NCBI RefSeq assembly: GCF_001194135.2
Contig: NC_068993.1
Coordinates: forward strand, 20,961,593-21,025,592
Length of the DNA: 64,000 nucleotides
Direction of reading: 5' to 3'
Origin: Octopus bimaculoides
Taxonomy: Eukaryota
In this document: piece after piece, positions 4,655-24,942 of the stretch
Layout: every line of letters begins with the position of its first letter
Numbering within the stretch: position 1 is the first letter of the stretch
Program-made: the position numbers and the translations under genes
The notes under the pieces: generated by a model
Databases searched by the model: none
What the model saw: only the letters and a program-made list of their open reading frames with translations
What the model was told of the DNA's origin: nothing

Positions 4655-4796
4655 ACAAAACGGAAGTTTTGGTATCCTTGCTCATACGGGGCGCTTCCAT
4701 ACGTTCTTCATTCAGCGGTACAGCTTCAGTAATATACACCGAAAGAGAGTAGATGAATATAAAAGTTAACAAACTGAAGGTGTTCAAGACGTCCAT
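4655..4796 (-). CDS. Gene A coding exon 1: signal peptide and propeptide (exon starts at 4813 with 17 nt of 5'UTR)
   Basis: Acceptor ttttcttttaagtcctttacAG (4815-4814); ATG 4796; MDVLNTFSLLTFIFIYSLSVYITEA-VPLNEERMEAPRMSKDTKTSVL; donor GTAAGT 4654-4649, phase 1; 94% identical to 24801-24942. Confidence 0.88.
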
Positions 4797-4890
4797 TGTG
4801 GGATCTCGTTATTCTGTAAAGGACTTAAAAGAAAAATGAATAATTTGTCAATGTTTTAAACAAAATGCAATTATTGTTATTATTTATATC

Positions 4891-5112
4891 GAAATTTAAA
4901 GGCGGTGAGCTGACAGAATTGTTAACACGAAGGGTGAAATGCATAGCAGTATTTAATTCATCTTTATATTCTGAGTTCGAATTCTGCCGAGGTCGACTTT
5001 ACCTTTCATTCTTTCGAGGTTTTGTGAAATAAGCACCAGTCAAGCACTGGGGTCGATGTAATCGACTTACCTCACCCCCAAAATTTCAGGTCTTGTGCCT
5101 ATAGTAGAATGG
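4891..5112 (+). mobile_element. tRNA-derived SINE, family B (CORE-like)
   Basis: tRNA-like head, gtcgactttacctttcat...taagcaccag core; 12-bp TSD attatttatatc (4879-4890, 5113-5124). Confidence 0.85.
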
Positions 5113-5310
5113 ATTATTTATATCTCAATAAGAGCTGCAACTTCTTGAAAATAAAGAAAATACCATACATTCATTTGCGTGGTTGGTGCCATGTATACAC
5201 TGGATAGAACACATGAGATATCGACTTTGTATTTCGACAACGCTTATATCACAATTTGTATACCATTAAAACTGAAACATAGTGTCACGTGCTGGTATAA
5301 AGGAAAGCCA

Positions 5311-5490
5311 GTTTAATTCCAAATAGGTGTTATAAAGTCAATTTAAATGCAACTAGGTGTTGTAAAGTTAATTTATCTGGAAATAGGTGTTGTAAAGTCA
5401 ATTTAACTGCAAATAGTTGTTCTAAAGTCAATTTCATTCCAAATAGGTGTTGTAAAGTCAATTAAATAGCGACTAGGTGTTGTAAAGTAG
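5311..5490. repeat. 30-bp minisatellite, 6 degenerate copies
   Basis: Unit ~atttaattccaaataggtgttgtaaagtca at exact 30-bp period. Confidence 0.9.
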
Positions 5491-5500
5491 TACAGCTTAC

Positions 5501-5551
5501 CAAAGCAAGCAGAAGTAAGAATACATCCCTTATAAAGGGATTGAGAATAAT
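5501..5551 (-). other. Candidate non-coding 5' exon of gene A
   Basis: ctgcttgctttg|GTAAGC donor at 5500, matched by ctgcttgctttg|GTAAAC at 24087 in gene B; 5' boundary uncertain. Confidence 0.5.
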
Positions 5552-6164
5552 CTATGTCAATACAATTGATTGAGTGCAGAGAAAAAGGTTTAGGAACTAT
5601 AAAATCACTAACTAGACAACAAGAAAAATGCACGTATGCACATCAGCACACATAAACGTACACATACAAACACACTCATATGTAATACAGACAGACATCT
5701 GTGTCATTACACATGCATATATATANNNNNNNNNNNNNNNNNNNNNNNNNNNNNNNNNNNNNNNNNNNNNNNNNNNNNNNNNNNNNNNNNNNNNNNNNNN
5801 NNNNNNNNNNNNNNNNNNNNNNNNNNNNNNNNNNNNNTATATATATATATATATATATATGTGTGTGTGTGTGTTTGTGTGTGTGCGCATTTGTGTTTGT
5901 ATGTGTAGATATGCATGTATATGTGCATATGTATGTAGGTATGCATTTATGTATGTATTCATGTATATATCTATGATAAAAGTGATGATTGGATGTTTTA
6001 CTAAATTTCTGTAGAATTCAAGCAAGTCACTAACAGCCTGAGACAAGACAATTCCAGAGATTTGAGAGCATGGGAGAATTAATGTAGTGATATATAATGG
6101 ACGGTTTGGATGTTTTTGCCCAATTATTCTGGTTCTGGTGTACCATTTGTACGAGCGATAGAAC

Positions 6165-6259
6165 AATATTTCCTTCGGATAGCATTGTGAATTGATTTAG
6201 AAATGATGTTGTGTCTCGTGGGGATATAGTACTTTGCAGATAATTTTGGTCATCTGCTG
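6165..6259 (-). promoter_or_regulatory. Conserved non-coding block upstream of gene A
   Basis: 95 bp, 10 mismatches versus 22485-22579 (inverted), better conserved than neighbouring duplicated DNA. Confidence 0.5.
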
Positions 6260-6390
6260 GTAATATTGAAGCTACTTCCAGACTCATAAATCGAGAATCT
6301 CTCTGATAATGTAAAGAGACATCTTCATCTCATATATCAACCAGGTATATATATATATATATATATATATATATACATATGCTTGTATAT

Positions 6391-6594
6391 CTATCTATAT
6401 GTACACACACACGCACATACACACTCGCGCGCGCACACAGACGCACGGATACGCACGTACGCGCACACACACTCACACGCACACACACTCACACGCACGG
6501 ACACACACACATACACTCGCACACACACACACGCACACACACACACACACACACACACACACACACACACACACACACACACACACACACACAC
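6391..6594. repeat. (CA)n microsatellite with degenerate flank
   Basis: Direct tandem repeat. Confidence 0.95.
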
Positions 6595-6769
6595 AATATT
6601 CTCAAATAAATTCAATTCGTTGTTTCCCTTGGATGTTATTTGAATTAGCACGAAAATATTTTTATGGAATTTTTAATGCTGTATTTTTCCTCTACAATGT
6701 TTGCTTATCTTTTTGGAAACTGAACTAAATTCTACCCGATTTCAGGTATATAACTATGGAGTATCATAT

Positions 6770-22484: not shown

Positions 22485-22579
22485 CAGCAGATGACCAAAA
22501 TTACCTGCAAAGTACTATAATCTCAAGAGACACAGCATTGTTTCTAAATCAATTCACAATACTATCTGAAGGAAATATT
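22485..22579 (+). promoter_or_regulatory. Conserved non-coding block upstream of gene B
   Basis: ~89% identical to 6165-6259 (inverted). Confidence 0.5.
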
Positions 22580-22749
22580 TCCTGGTTTTTTTACAAAATG
22601 TACTCCTGTACGAGGATCTATCGATATTTTCAAAAGTGCGGAATAGTTGGGCTAATATACCCAACCGCTCCATTATACTATATCGCTACATTAATTCTCA
22701 CATACAAATCTTTGGAATTATATAGTCTGTAACTAAGGAACTTGGTTAA

Positions 22750-23615
22750 GTTGTTGCACAAGAACGCCATTTCGCATATTCGGTCTTTTTTGCTGAATAG
22801 CTTCGTTGAGTCGGTGCAGTTGTTGAACATGCAGTATTGAGTGTTTGATTGCACTCTAGCAGTTCGCAATGATTTAAACCTTCCCAGTCCCATCATACAC
22901 ACAACATGGTCTATCGAGGATGAAGGTCTTGTTTTGCTCGCGGTTTCGCTTGTTTGTTGGAACTGAGCTATTCTTTTCGCAACTTCATTTTTCCTCACCA
23001 GTGACTATGTGGTAAAGAAAACACTATTTGTGACCATGTGTTGAGCAGTGTCAAACGAGCCAACTGGCGCCGATTGTGGAGCATTGATTTTTGTTGTTTT
23101 CGCTCATTGAATGAAGGTGTTTCACCACAGCTTTTTTTTTATCACAGTCTATCTGCTCCGCCAATTCTCTGGTCGTTTGACGTAGATTTTCGTGAAGAAG
23201 TTGATTCAATCGCTCTTCATCGAACTCAATTGGTCGATCGGTGTGTGATCCATCCTTGAGGTAAAAAATTCCCATTTTCAACCGCGAAAACGAACGGCGG
23301 GCGGTACTTTGAGACATTGCTCCTTCTCCATACACAGCACAAATCTCACGAGCAGCTTTGGCGGCCTTAACACCTCGATTAAATGCAAAAAATAAATGAT
23401 GTCGAAAATACTCAGTTTTGTCCACTTGAAATTCCATTTTAATGATCTAAAAATACACAAAAATCAATAAAATTAAAAAAAAATCAAAACACACTACAGC
23501 AAAAAGTTCTCTTTTAAATAACATAACATTTTGCCTATGAGTTTTATTTCCGCGTGCATTCTTTAATTTGAAAAAAAAACAAAAAAACCGCTAATGAATT
23601 ATTCCTCAACTCAAT
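22750..23615 (-). mobile_element. Mariner (Mos1-like) transposon, 3'-truncated
   Basis: MEFQVDKTEYFRHHLFFAFNRGVKAAKAAREICAVYGEGA...FDEERLNQLLHEN HTH region; 5' TIR attgagttgaggaataattcattagcgg. Confidence 0.85.
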
Positions 23616-23647
23616 GGATAGTTCTCAATTTCTTTATAAGAAATATT

Positions 23648-23838
23648 GATTTCGAAATTTGGCACAAGGCCAGCGATTGTGAGGTAGGAGATCAGCCGAT
23701 AATATCGACCTCAGTGATCAACTGGTACTTATTTTATCGACCCCGAAAGGATGAAAGGCAAAGTCGACCCCGCCGGGATTTGAACTCAAATGTAAAGACG
23801 GAAGAAATGTTGCTCAGCATTTTGCCCGCTGGGCTAAC
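23648..23838 (-). mobile_element. SINE family B
   Basis: 16-bp TSD ctttataag(a/g)aatatt at 23632-23647 and 23839-23854. Confidence 0.8.
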
Positions 23839-23861
23839 CTTTATAAGGAATATTACTACGA

Positions 23862-24066
23862 GAAGGCAGAGTCGTTACCGCGTCGAACAAAATGCTTGGC
23901 ATTTCTTCTGATTTAACATTTTAAGTTCAAATGCCACCGAGGTCAACTTTGCCATTCATCCTTTCGGGGTCTATAAAATTAAGTACCAGTCGAGACTGGG
24001 GTAGATATAATCAATAAGTCATTGCTCCACCCAAATTTCAGTGCTTGTACCTATTGTAGAAAGAAT
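23862..24066 (+). mobile_element. SINE family B
   Basis: gtcaactttgccattcatcctttcggggtctataaaattaagtaccag core. Confidence 0.8.
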
Positions 24067-24159
24067 TATAACAACTGCTTGCTTTGGTAAACTGTGCAAA
24101 TTTACAACCACTACCTGAAGTTAAATTAGCTCTTCTTTATTGTGGAACCGTTTTACATT

Positions 24160-24542
24160 TTTTGCTGGCACTCCGTCGTTTACGACGTCGAGGGTTCCAG
24201 TTGATCCGATCAACGGAACAGCCTGCTCGTGAAATTAACGTTCAAGTAGCTGAGCACTCCACAGAAACGTGTACCGTTAACATAGTTCTCGGGGATATTC
24301 AGCGTGACACAGTGTGACAAGGCTGACCCTTTGAATTACAGGCACAACAGAAACAGGAAGTAAGAGTGAGAGAAAGTTGTGGTGGAAGAGTACAGCAGGG
24401 TTCACCACCATCTCCTGCCGGAGCCTCGTGGAGCTTTAGGTGTTTTCGCTCAATAAACACCCACAGCGCCCGGTCTGGGAATCAAAACCGTGATCCTATG
24501 ACTGCGAGTCCGCTGCCCTAACCACTGGGCCATTGCGCCTCC
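24160..24542 (-). mobile_element. tRNA-derived SINE, family C, in gene B intron 1
   Basis: Head GGCGCAATGGCCCAGTGGTTAGGGCAGCGGACTCGCAG with A/B boxes; 13-bp TSD accgttttacatt (24147-24159, 24543-24555). Confidence 0.88.
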
Positions 24543-24800
24543 ACCGTTTTACATTATACCAGCACATTACACCACCGTTCAGTTTTAAATCTGTACAAAT
24601 TATAGCATTAAGTTATATGCACCATGGAGACACCGAAATATAAAACTGATATTACATATGCTGTATTCAATGTATAAATGGCACCAACCACACACCTTTT
24701 CATATAAATATAAATAATAACTAATTATATTTTTGTACAACATCAACAAATTATTCATTTCTCTTTTAAATCTTCTTTTACAGAGTAACGCGATTCCATA

Positions 24801-24942
24801 ATGAACGCCTTGAACACCTTCAGTTTGGTAACTTTTATATTCATCTACTCTCTTTCGGTGTATATTACTGAAGCTGTACCACTGAATGAAGAACGTATGG
24901 AAGCGCCCCGTATGGGCAAGGATACCAAGACTTCCATTTTGA
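24801..24942 (+). CDS. Gene B coding exon 1: signal peptide and propeptide (exon starts at 24784)
   Basis: Acceptor ctcttttaaatcttcttttacAG (24782-24783); same 17-nt UTR length as gene A; MNALNTFSLVTFIFIYSLSVYITEA-VPLNEERMEAPRMGKDTKTSIL; donor GTGAGT at 24943, phase 1. Confidence 0.88.

Follow-up and report, generated by a model that had tools for sequence, protein, structure and literature searches.

A head-to-head gene pair in octopus DNA

The DNA considered here is a stretch of 64,000 nucleotides (nt) from Octopus bimaculoides (contig NC_068993.1, positions 20,961,593 to 21,025,592 of the forward strand), referred to below as the window and numbered from its first letter. It is AT-rich animal DNA of about 36% G+C from a draft scaffold, with 8 runs of N in 64 kb, and it contains two divergent (head-to-head) two-exon genes, gene A on the minus strand and gene B on the plus strand. 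The first coding exons of the two genes are nearly identical over most of their length, and their second coding exons differ as much as the non-coding DNA that was duplicated along with them. The initial annotation had drawn attention to this contrast, but had given 4655-24942 as the locus, an interval that takes in just the two copies of exon 1 and what lies between; both copies of exon 2, which carry the LHFV(L/I)GP motif at 1698-1709 (minus strand) and 35067-35078 (plus strand), are outside it. The parts of gene A are as follows:

4796..4655, minus strand: gene A coding exon 1, 142 nt, with the ATG at 4796 and the donor GTAAGT from 4654
4669..4788, minus strand: frozen core of gene A exon 1, nt 9-128 of the coding sequence (CDS), with 3 differences in 120 nt from B, delimited by a change-point scan
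4797..4902, minus strand: gene A proximal promoter and 5′ untranslated region (5′UTR) block, 82.5% identical to B, with 6 gap columns
4654..1769, minus strand: gene A intron, 2886 nt, phase 1, GTAAGT...TTTTATAG, gap-free
1768..1590, minus strand: gene A coding exon 2, with the remainder of the pro-region, KR, LHFVLGP, a 32-codon divergent tail and TAA
1349..1426, minus strand: block 3′ of the gene A stop codon, 83% identical to B 35526-35602, the pair being unique in the window
4915..5128, no strand given: multi-copy repeat resembling a short interspersed nuclear element (SINE) in the proximal upstream region of A, without a counterpart at the matching site of B

Gene B has the same layout:

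24801..24942, plus strand: gene B coding exon 1, 142 nt, with GTGAGT as the adjoining donor
24695..24800, plus strand: gene B proximal promoter and 5′UTR block, with TATAAA at 24709-24714
24943..35007, plus strand: gene B intron, 10065 nt as assembled, phase 1, acceptor TTTTATAG as in A
35008..35171, plus strand: gene B coding exon 2, with the remainder of the pro-region, GKR, LHFVIGP, a 27-codon divergent tail ending in FRG, and TAA
35526..35602, plus strand: block 3′ of the gene B stop codon, partner of A 1349-1426

The spliced product of gene B (101 aa) is identical to the Octopus bimaculoides protein A0A0L8FXX0 of UniProt, described as “uncharacterized”, and the exon model is thus consistent with the annotated protein. 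The product of gene A (106 aa) has no entry in a collection of 15 billion proteins, and gene A is an unannotated gene. A TATAAA sequence at −92 of gene A (4883-4888) is common to B, and since it has been kept 92 nt upstream of the ATG in both genes, exon 1 is probably the first exon, with a 5′UTR of about 60 nt. The intron of gene B contains an assembly gap (33358-33470) and a 2-kb transposon-like fragment (30156-32119), and a mariner-like open reading frame (ORF) at 2065-2397, minus strand, is located in the intron of gene A.

Exon 1 encodes the predicted signal peptide and the initial 22 residues of the pro-region (described here for gene A). Residues 1-25 form a hydrophobic segment that ends in T-E-A before V26, with a core at residues 6-22 of mean Kyte-Doolittle hydropathy 1.8, and this signal-like segment is identical between A and B at 22 of its 25 residues and 72 of its 75 nt. 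The sole element that AlphaFold predicts with confidence is a helix at residues 3-25 (predicted local distance difference test score 87-96), the remainder being modelled as disordered, as would be expected of a signal peptide followed by a processed peptide. Both products have KR at residues 58-59, after which 47 (A) or 42 (B) residues follow with one cysteine each; the net charges of these putative mature peptides are +2 and +4. Judged from these features, the products would be secreted and cleaved at KR, and a fast-diverging product suggests an outward-facing role, for example in defence, venom or saliva, or chemical signalling. With regard to features of neuropeptide precursors, the KR is common to A and B and the amidation signals are not conserved, in that B has G-KR and a C-terminal G, both of them possible amidation signals, whereas A has A-KR and a C-terminal K and so neither.

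Divergence along the inverted duplication

Homology between the two genes extends beyond their exons, through five collinear blocks upstream and the block pair downstream of the stop codons. The arms and the upstream blocks, each of which is unique in the window, are:

A arm 5176..12269 (minus strand) and B arm 20238..24694 (plus strand): arms of the inverted duplication, carrying five unique collinear upstream blocks
A 5176-5306 and B 24548-24694, inverted: collinear block pair 1
A 6041-6325 and B 22412-22728, inverted: collinear block pair 2
A 7348-7860 and B 21412-21977, inverted: collinear block pair 3
A 9667-9893 and B 21203-21428, inverted: collinear block pair 4
A 12049-12269 and B 20238-20457, inverted: collinear block pair 5

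Together, the five upstream blocks and the 3′ block pair indicate that the whole gene, with at least 7.5 kb of upstream DNA, was duplicated in inverted orientation. Realigned with both genes set in the same orientation, the five blocks served as a neutral yardstick and gave 987 matches against 357 mismatches, plus 165 gap columns. Their identity is 73.4% when gaps are ignored (357/1344 differences) and 65.4% when they are counted; the earlier by-eye estimate of 70-75% was therefore accurate. Upstream of A just about 1.4 kb of the 7.5 kb can be aligned to B, and almost nothing in the introns. The unaligned remainder has been replaced by transposon turnover, as illustrated by the SINE-like repeat at 4915-5128, which lies 107-380 nt upstream of the start codon of gene A and around which A −510..−380 aligns with B −253..−107. 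A 2-kb pair of 78% identity (9837-11857 and 30156-32119) was rejected as a yardstick because it is not collinear, being upstream of A but within the intron of B; this dispersed repeat is probably a piece of a retrotransposon and carries broken ORFs, and in two of these that were tested no Pfam domain was found.

The 3′ blocks (A 1349-1426, B 35526-35602) are about 80-95 nt long, lie 165-430 nt past the stop codons and are better conserved than the adjacent coding tail. An AATAAA is present inside the downstream block of A and not in that of B. The block of A is probably 3′UTR, and the pair could be a 3′UTR regulatory element.

It was also considered whether the two copies might be an artefact of assembly, i.e., haplotypes or a mis-joined or collapsed repeat, in which case the contrast between the exons would have no biological meaning. 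The draft state of the scaffold lends this some colour, since three of the 8 N runs (5726-5837, 12275-12374 and 20853-21018) lie between the copies, in the approximately 20 kb of intergenic DNA that separates genes A and B, and one lies in the intron of B. However, gene A stands in gap-free sequence, no assembly gap overlaps a coding exon or the gene A intron, and with the three intergenic gaps outside the exons no reading frame depends on them. Three gaps fall within microsatellites and have the same repeat flanking each side; gap 5726-5837 is bordered by (TA)n and gap 33358-33470 by (CA)n on either side. The joins at gaps 5726 and 20853 are supported by the unique homology blocks, which stay collinear across both. 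Finally, the flanks differ by about 27% and carry distinct transposon insertions, far beyond allelic variation. An artefact is thus largely refuted and, in our judgement, barely credible.

In exon 1 the copies differ at 8 of 142 nt (94.4% identity), at positions 4, 8, 28, 81, 115, 129, 136 and 142, with two synonymous changes (CCG/CCA and AAA/AAG) and six non-synonymous ones, precisely as counted in the initial annotation. Next to it, the 106 nt 5′ of the ATG show 18 differences in 103 positions and 6 gap columns (82.5% identity), and the initial 60 nt of the intron show 11 in 54 (79.6% identity). The reach of trustworthy intron alignment is limited by a (TATG)n microsatellite about 50 nt past the donor in both introns (4460-4620, minus strand; 24980-25120, plus strand). 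Two antisense ORFs across exon 1 (4356-4769, plus strand; 24600-25151, minus strand) were dismissed as candidate genes, since they consist largely of translated (TATG)n microsatellite. The conservation of exon 1 exceeds that of its two immediate flanks pooled (Fisher p=0.0007) and that of the distal blocks (Fisher p=1e-9), which bears out the claim that it is far more conserved than neutral DNA; the immediate flanks are themselves slightly above the distal blocks in identity (p=0.033).

The divergence at synonymous (dS) and non-synonymous (dN) sites was estimated by the Nei-Gojobori method, pairwise between the two genes and without an outgroup. In exon 1, 2 of 31 synonymous and 5 of 110 non-synonymous sites differ, giving a dS of 0.067, a dN of 0.047 and a dN/dS of about 0.7. 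Its synonymous sites are less diverged than the distal blocks (p=0.011) and than the synonymous sites of exon 2 (7/18, p=0.008), and the conservation that had been proposed for silent sites too therefore holds against the blocks, but is not significant against the immediate flanks (p=0.12). Non-synonymous sites likewise differ between exon 1 and exon 2 (Fisher p=0.0001). Both dS and dN are about 7-fold lower in exon 1 than in exon 2, so that the ratio is unchanged (0.7 versus 0.64). The exon-1 differences are distributed 5/1/2 over codon positions 1/2/3, without an excess at third positions, and together with the dN/dS of about 0.7 this pattern gives no sign of purifying selection at the protein level since the copies were last identical.

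A change-point scan for a low-divergence tract was run over −106 to +202 and compared with 500 permutations. The tract that it found corresponds to CDS nt 9-128, with 3 differences in 120 nt versus 46 in 191 outside it, and none of the 500 permutations was as good (p~0.002). The initial 8 and the final 14 nt of exon 1 are as diverged as the non-coding flanks (about 80-83% identity). The notion of a frozen exon thus applies to a nearly identical interior, but not to the edges of the exon. Scans for Rfam families and tRNAs found nothing over exon 1 or anywhere else in the window.

Exon 2 behaves differently: its initial 80 nt differ at 22 sites, the exact number recorded previously, and at 72.5% identity are indistinguishable from the distal blocks (73.4%, p=0.90). 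Over the 27 alignable codons, 6.7 of 18.3 synonymous and 16.3 of 62.7 non-synonymous sites differ (dS 0.50, dN 0.32, dN/dS 0.64); over the 15 codons after KR the dN/dS is 0.52, and the differences are spread 6/7/9 over codon positions 1/2/3. After the GP the tails (96 and 81 nt) have a best nucleotide alignment no better than that of shuffled sequences (p=0.29); their protein alignment is marginal (p=0.065), requires indels and keeps one cysteine followed by D/E-K. A frameshift was rejected as the origin of the divergent tail, as the tails have no nucleotide similarity in any register. These results agree with the initial statements that the mature region is at or below neutral identity and that the part after LHFV(L/I)GP barely aligns and needs indels. 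The description of the mature exon as hypervariable fits the unalignable tail; the exon as a whole is not uniformly variable, in that KRNAA..D...LHFV(L/I)GP....C(D/E)K is common to both copies. Both exon-2 frames are also open, which under unconstrained substitution would have a probability of about 0.30 × 0.45 (~0.13), and the shared motif and the open frames make a weak constraint on exon 2 visible.

Conversion, selection and decay as possible explanations

The contrast between the exons is real and statistically well supported. Two causes had been put forward for it, namely positive selection on the mature peptide and gene conversion of exon 1. The first is not borne out, given a dN/dS of 0.64 in the 27 alignable codons and a tail too saturated to measure. 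Moreover, most of the neutral DNA of the duplication is unalignable as well, and an unalignable tail therefore does not exceed neutrality. The second is favoured, and we infer it from the pattern of the tract: silent and replacement divergence drop equally, there is no third-position excess, the tract ends within the exon, and its flanks are intermediate, all of which speaks for gene conversion over purifying selection on the protein. The comparison demonstrates no purifying selection on the amino acid sequence that exon 1 encodes and no positive selection on the mature peptide.

The reading that we prefer, with moderate confidence, is a duplication followed by drift of exon 2 at the neutral rate and a later gene conversion of the exon-1 tract. 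An old inverted segmental duplication copied the entire gene, both exons of it, for a small and probably secreted precursor that consists of a signal peptide, a pro-region with KR and, at the C terminus, a 42-47-residue peptide containing one cysteine. The duplication extends over no less than 11 kb (one arm) and 15 kb (the other arm), and its age is reflected by a neutral identity of about 73% and an exon-2 dS of about 0.5. Exon 2 would then have diverged at the neutral rate, under a weak constraint that kept only the KRNAA...LHFV(L/I)GP...C(D/E)K motif and an open frame. Much later, a tract of about 120 nt in exon 1 would have been re-homogenised by ectopic gene conversion between the inverted copies. 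The surrounding 300 nt or so (core promoter, 5′UTR and start of the intron), at 80-83% identity, might reflect either an older conversion or regulatory constraint. Of this scheme, the gene models, the duplication, the step in divergence at silent as well as replacement sites and the location of the tract are shown by the sequences; conversion as the cause, like secretion, cleavage at KR and any role of the product, is an inference.

Selection without any conversion has to be weighed against this scheme. Here, strong purifying selection that includes silent sites, acting on the mRNA or on the signal-coding region, would have preserved exon 1, and positive, diversifying selection would have driven the mature peptide apart, as in conotoxins and frog skin peptides. 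Such an explanation would suit the significantly greater conservation of exon 1 than of both immediate flanks (p=0.0007), the conservative nature of 5 of the 6 exon-1 replacements, and a tail that is saturated after the GP while a block 170-350 nt past the stop is still 83% identical; it also has a precedent in conotoxin genes, in which Dn and Ds show the same rise from signal to mature exon and the first introns are in phase 1 (PMC3862624). On the other hand, the dN/dS in the alignable mature part (0.64) is not above 1, the divergence of that part equals the neutral yardstick (p=0.90), and the tail is not demonstrably beyond neutrality, given that the neutral DNA of the duplication is likewise unalignable for the most part. 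Exon 1 itself, with a dN/dS of about 0.7 and no third-position excess, has initial 8 and final 14 nt as diverged as the flanks. Selection alone is therefore possible, but we consider it the less probable account.

Gene A might also be a silent or decaying duplicate, of which exon 2 is drifting and exon 1 was recently overwritten from the working copy B. In keeping with this, only B is annotated, A being absent from all protein collections; moreover, there is a SINE-like repeat 107-380 nt before the start codon of A, the exon-2 differences are even over codon positions (6/7/9), and the tail is like random sequence. But A retains its ATG, the TATAAA at −92 and a consensus donor GTAAGT, its acceptor shares 11 of 12 bases with that of B, and it has an open frame of near-equal length (106 versus 101 aa); the probability of about 0.13 that free substitution would leave the two exon-2 frames open together would be lower still with indels, and annotation often misses small genes. 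Decay of gene A is thus quite improbable.

Several points weigh against conversion after neutral drift of exon 2, the account preferred here. As the comparison comprises a single pair of sequences without an outgroup, it does not distinguish conversion from nucleotide-level selection in the region that codes for the signal: a discrete, little-diverged tract, affecting silent and replacement sites alike and ending off functional boundaries, is compatible with conversion without proving it. Compared with the immediate flanks (29/157), the lower divergence of exon 1 at synonymous sites is not significant (p=0.12), and the boundaries of the tract rest on a handful of differences, so that they are uncertain by about 15 nt. 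The conservative exon-1 replacements (D/N, V/A, L/V, S/G and V/I, i.e., 5 of 6) hint at filtering at the protein level, and the identity of the promoter and 5′UTR may have been raised by function alone. In addition, the adjacency and inverted orientation of the A and B copies hang on the single scaffold join at 12275-12374, and both genes are known from sequence alone, A being unannotated.

Known systems, relatives and other elements of the window

The likeness to conotoxins, suggested at the outset, is one of architecture and of rate pattern. Conotoxin genes have a phase-1 intron 1, and their Dn and Ds are both higher in the mature exon than in the signal exon (PMC3862624). The octopus pair shares with them the secreted prepropeptide (as predicted here), the signal and early pro-region on an exon of their own, a phase-1 first intron, long introns, the steep rise of Ds and Dn to the mature exon, and indels in the mature exon only (PMC3862624); in the conotoxin A superfamily there are likewise just two exons, split within the pro-region. 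The likeness does not extend to homology, a cysteine framework, a large family or a dN/dS above 1: there is no sequence similarity, one cysteine stands in place of a conserved multi-cysteine framework, there are two genes rather than dozens, the dN/dS is 0.64 where it could be measured, and the N-terminal half of the putative mature peptide keeps its motif. Two genes for which no homologues were found do not establish a conotoxin-like superfamily.

Similar considerations apply to other secreted peptides. Amphibian skin antimicrobial peptide precursors of the dermaseptin and brevinin type likewise combine a signal exon that is conserved with a pro-piece that ends in KR, and their divergent C-terminal peptide is encoded by the second exon. 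The proposed analogy with these precursors is sound as regards architecture and rate pattern, but the octopus pro-region is rich in K and R instead of acidic, the structure model, of low confidence here, shows no amphipathic helix in the mature part, and there is no homology. The mussel MgCRP-I and myticalin peptides have the same precursor architecture and rate pattern and differ in that they belong to large families of genes, their mature peptides have six cysteines or are strongly cationic, and their tissue expression is established; the octopus genes are a pair only, with mildly cationic products (+2 to +4), one cysteine and no homology to them.

Closer in taxonomic terms is the octopod salivary superfamily 1 (tachykinin-like peptides and octotensins), which comprises octopod-restricted, locally duplicated small secreted peptides with no relatives beyond that lineage, whose genes form tandem arrays bordered by genes for FABP and the nuclear receptor GRF (bioRxiv 10.64898/2026.02.02.703354). 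The present pair is head-to-head, not tandem; the comparison was made with the description of the arrays, and no relative came out of the protein search with B. No FABP-like or nuclear-receptor GRF-like gene was found in the window by tblastn, a weak test made with approximate queries for FABP and the nuclear-receptor DNA-binding domain.

The searches for relatives gave a consistent picture. A k-mer-seeded search with A among 5.8 billion protein clusters returned B as the sole match, and an exhaustive phmmer search with B through 1.84 billion representatives returned B itself and one spurious match; in all, 15 billion proteins yielded no homologue. The spurious match, an ENA metagenome protein (P0002) of sixteen 55-residue repeats, was discarded because it aligns with 15 residues of the B tail at 22 bits per repeat, the summed E-value being an artefact. 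The precursor had no match in Pfam at E<=10, a scan of JGI metagenome contigs yielded no relative, an exact-sequence contig look-up with B gave no record, and no paper was found with the peptide strings or the accession A0A0L8FXX0. In the window itself, no third copy of exon 1 or exon 2 was detected by tblastn or nhmmer, so that there are two copies only, and a large paralogue family sharing the signal sequence was absent from the window, the protein clusters and the representatives.

The pair adds one small case, in orphan octopus genes, to an evolutionary pattern that is already familiar, and is a modest observation. It flags an unannotated gene (A) beside an uncharacterised orphan (B, A0A0L8FXX0) in Octopus bimaculoides, and as a close inverted pair it would offer a clean test site for the debate on conotoxins, i.e., whether conversion or selection at the nucleotide level keeps the signal exon constant. 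If the pattern holds in more copies and species, it would be a cephalopod case of a design that recurs in genes for secreted peptides, a constant signal exon joined to a fast-changing product exon. It could even be the tip of an undescribed, octopod-restricted family of secreted peptides (for venom or saliva, mucosal defence or chemical signalling), with a signal exon kept uniform by repeated conversion between inverted copies and a mature exon free to diversify; we regard this as unlikely, and if true the “constant address label, variable cargo” design known from conotoxins would have arisen independently in cephalopods.

The remainder of the window is rich in mobile and repeated elements. 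Fragments of mariner/Mos1-type transposases are found at 2065-2397 (minus strand), 6965-7276 (plus strand), 23051-23437 (minus strand) and 50615-50911 (minus strand); the ORF at 23051-23437 matches the Mos1 helix-turn-helix domain (PF17906, E=2.6e-15), and the other three are mariner-like by motif, with no Pfam match. The SINE-like repeat of about 200 nt, which has no tRNA or Rfam match, is present in at least 8 copies at 70-77% identity, with 11 matches in the window, including those at 4915-5128, 18295-18449, 20444-20661, 20725-20852, 23641-24069, 36523-36600 and 45687-45802. In the spacer between the duplication arms, an ORF of 120 aa at 17996-18358 (plus strand), overlapped by an antisense ORF of similar length, has a below-threshold match to STPR (PF21107, E=4.4e-5, 24.3 bits versus a cutoff of 27). 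The ORFs at 40026-42137 resemble transposon remnants, their sole Pfam match, to L_protein_N, being weak and short of the threshold. The interval 57068-59825 is taken up by a tandem duplication of about 1.4 kb with 75% identity, and the segments 38797-40001 and 59751-60329 are related to it (75-86% near 38.8-40.0 kb). The most similar long repeat in the window is an inverted 338-nt pair at 55036-55373 and 61270-61602, about 6 kb apart and 95% identical.

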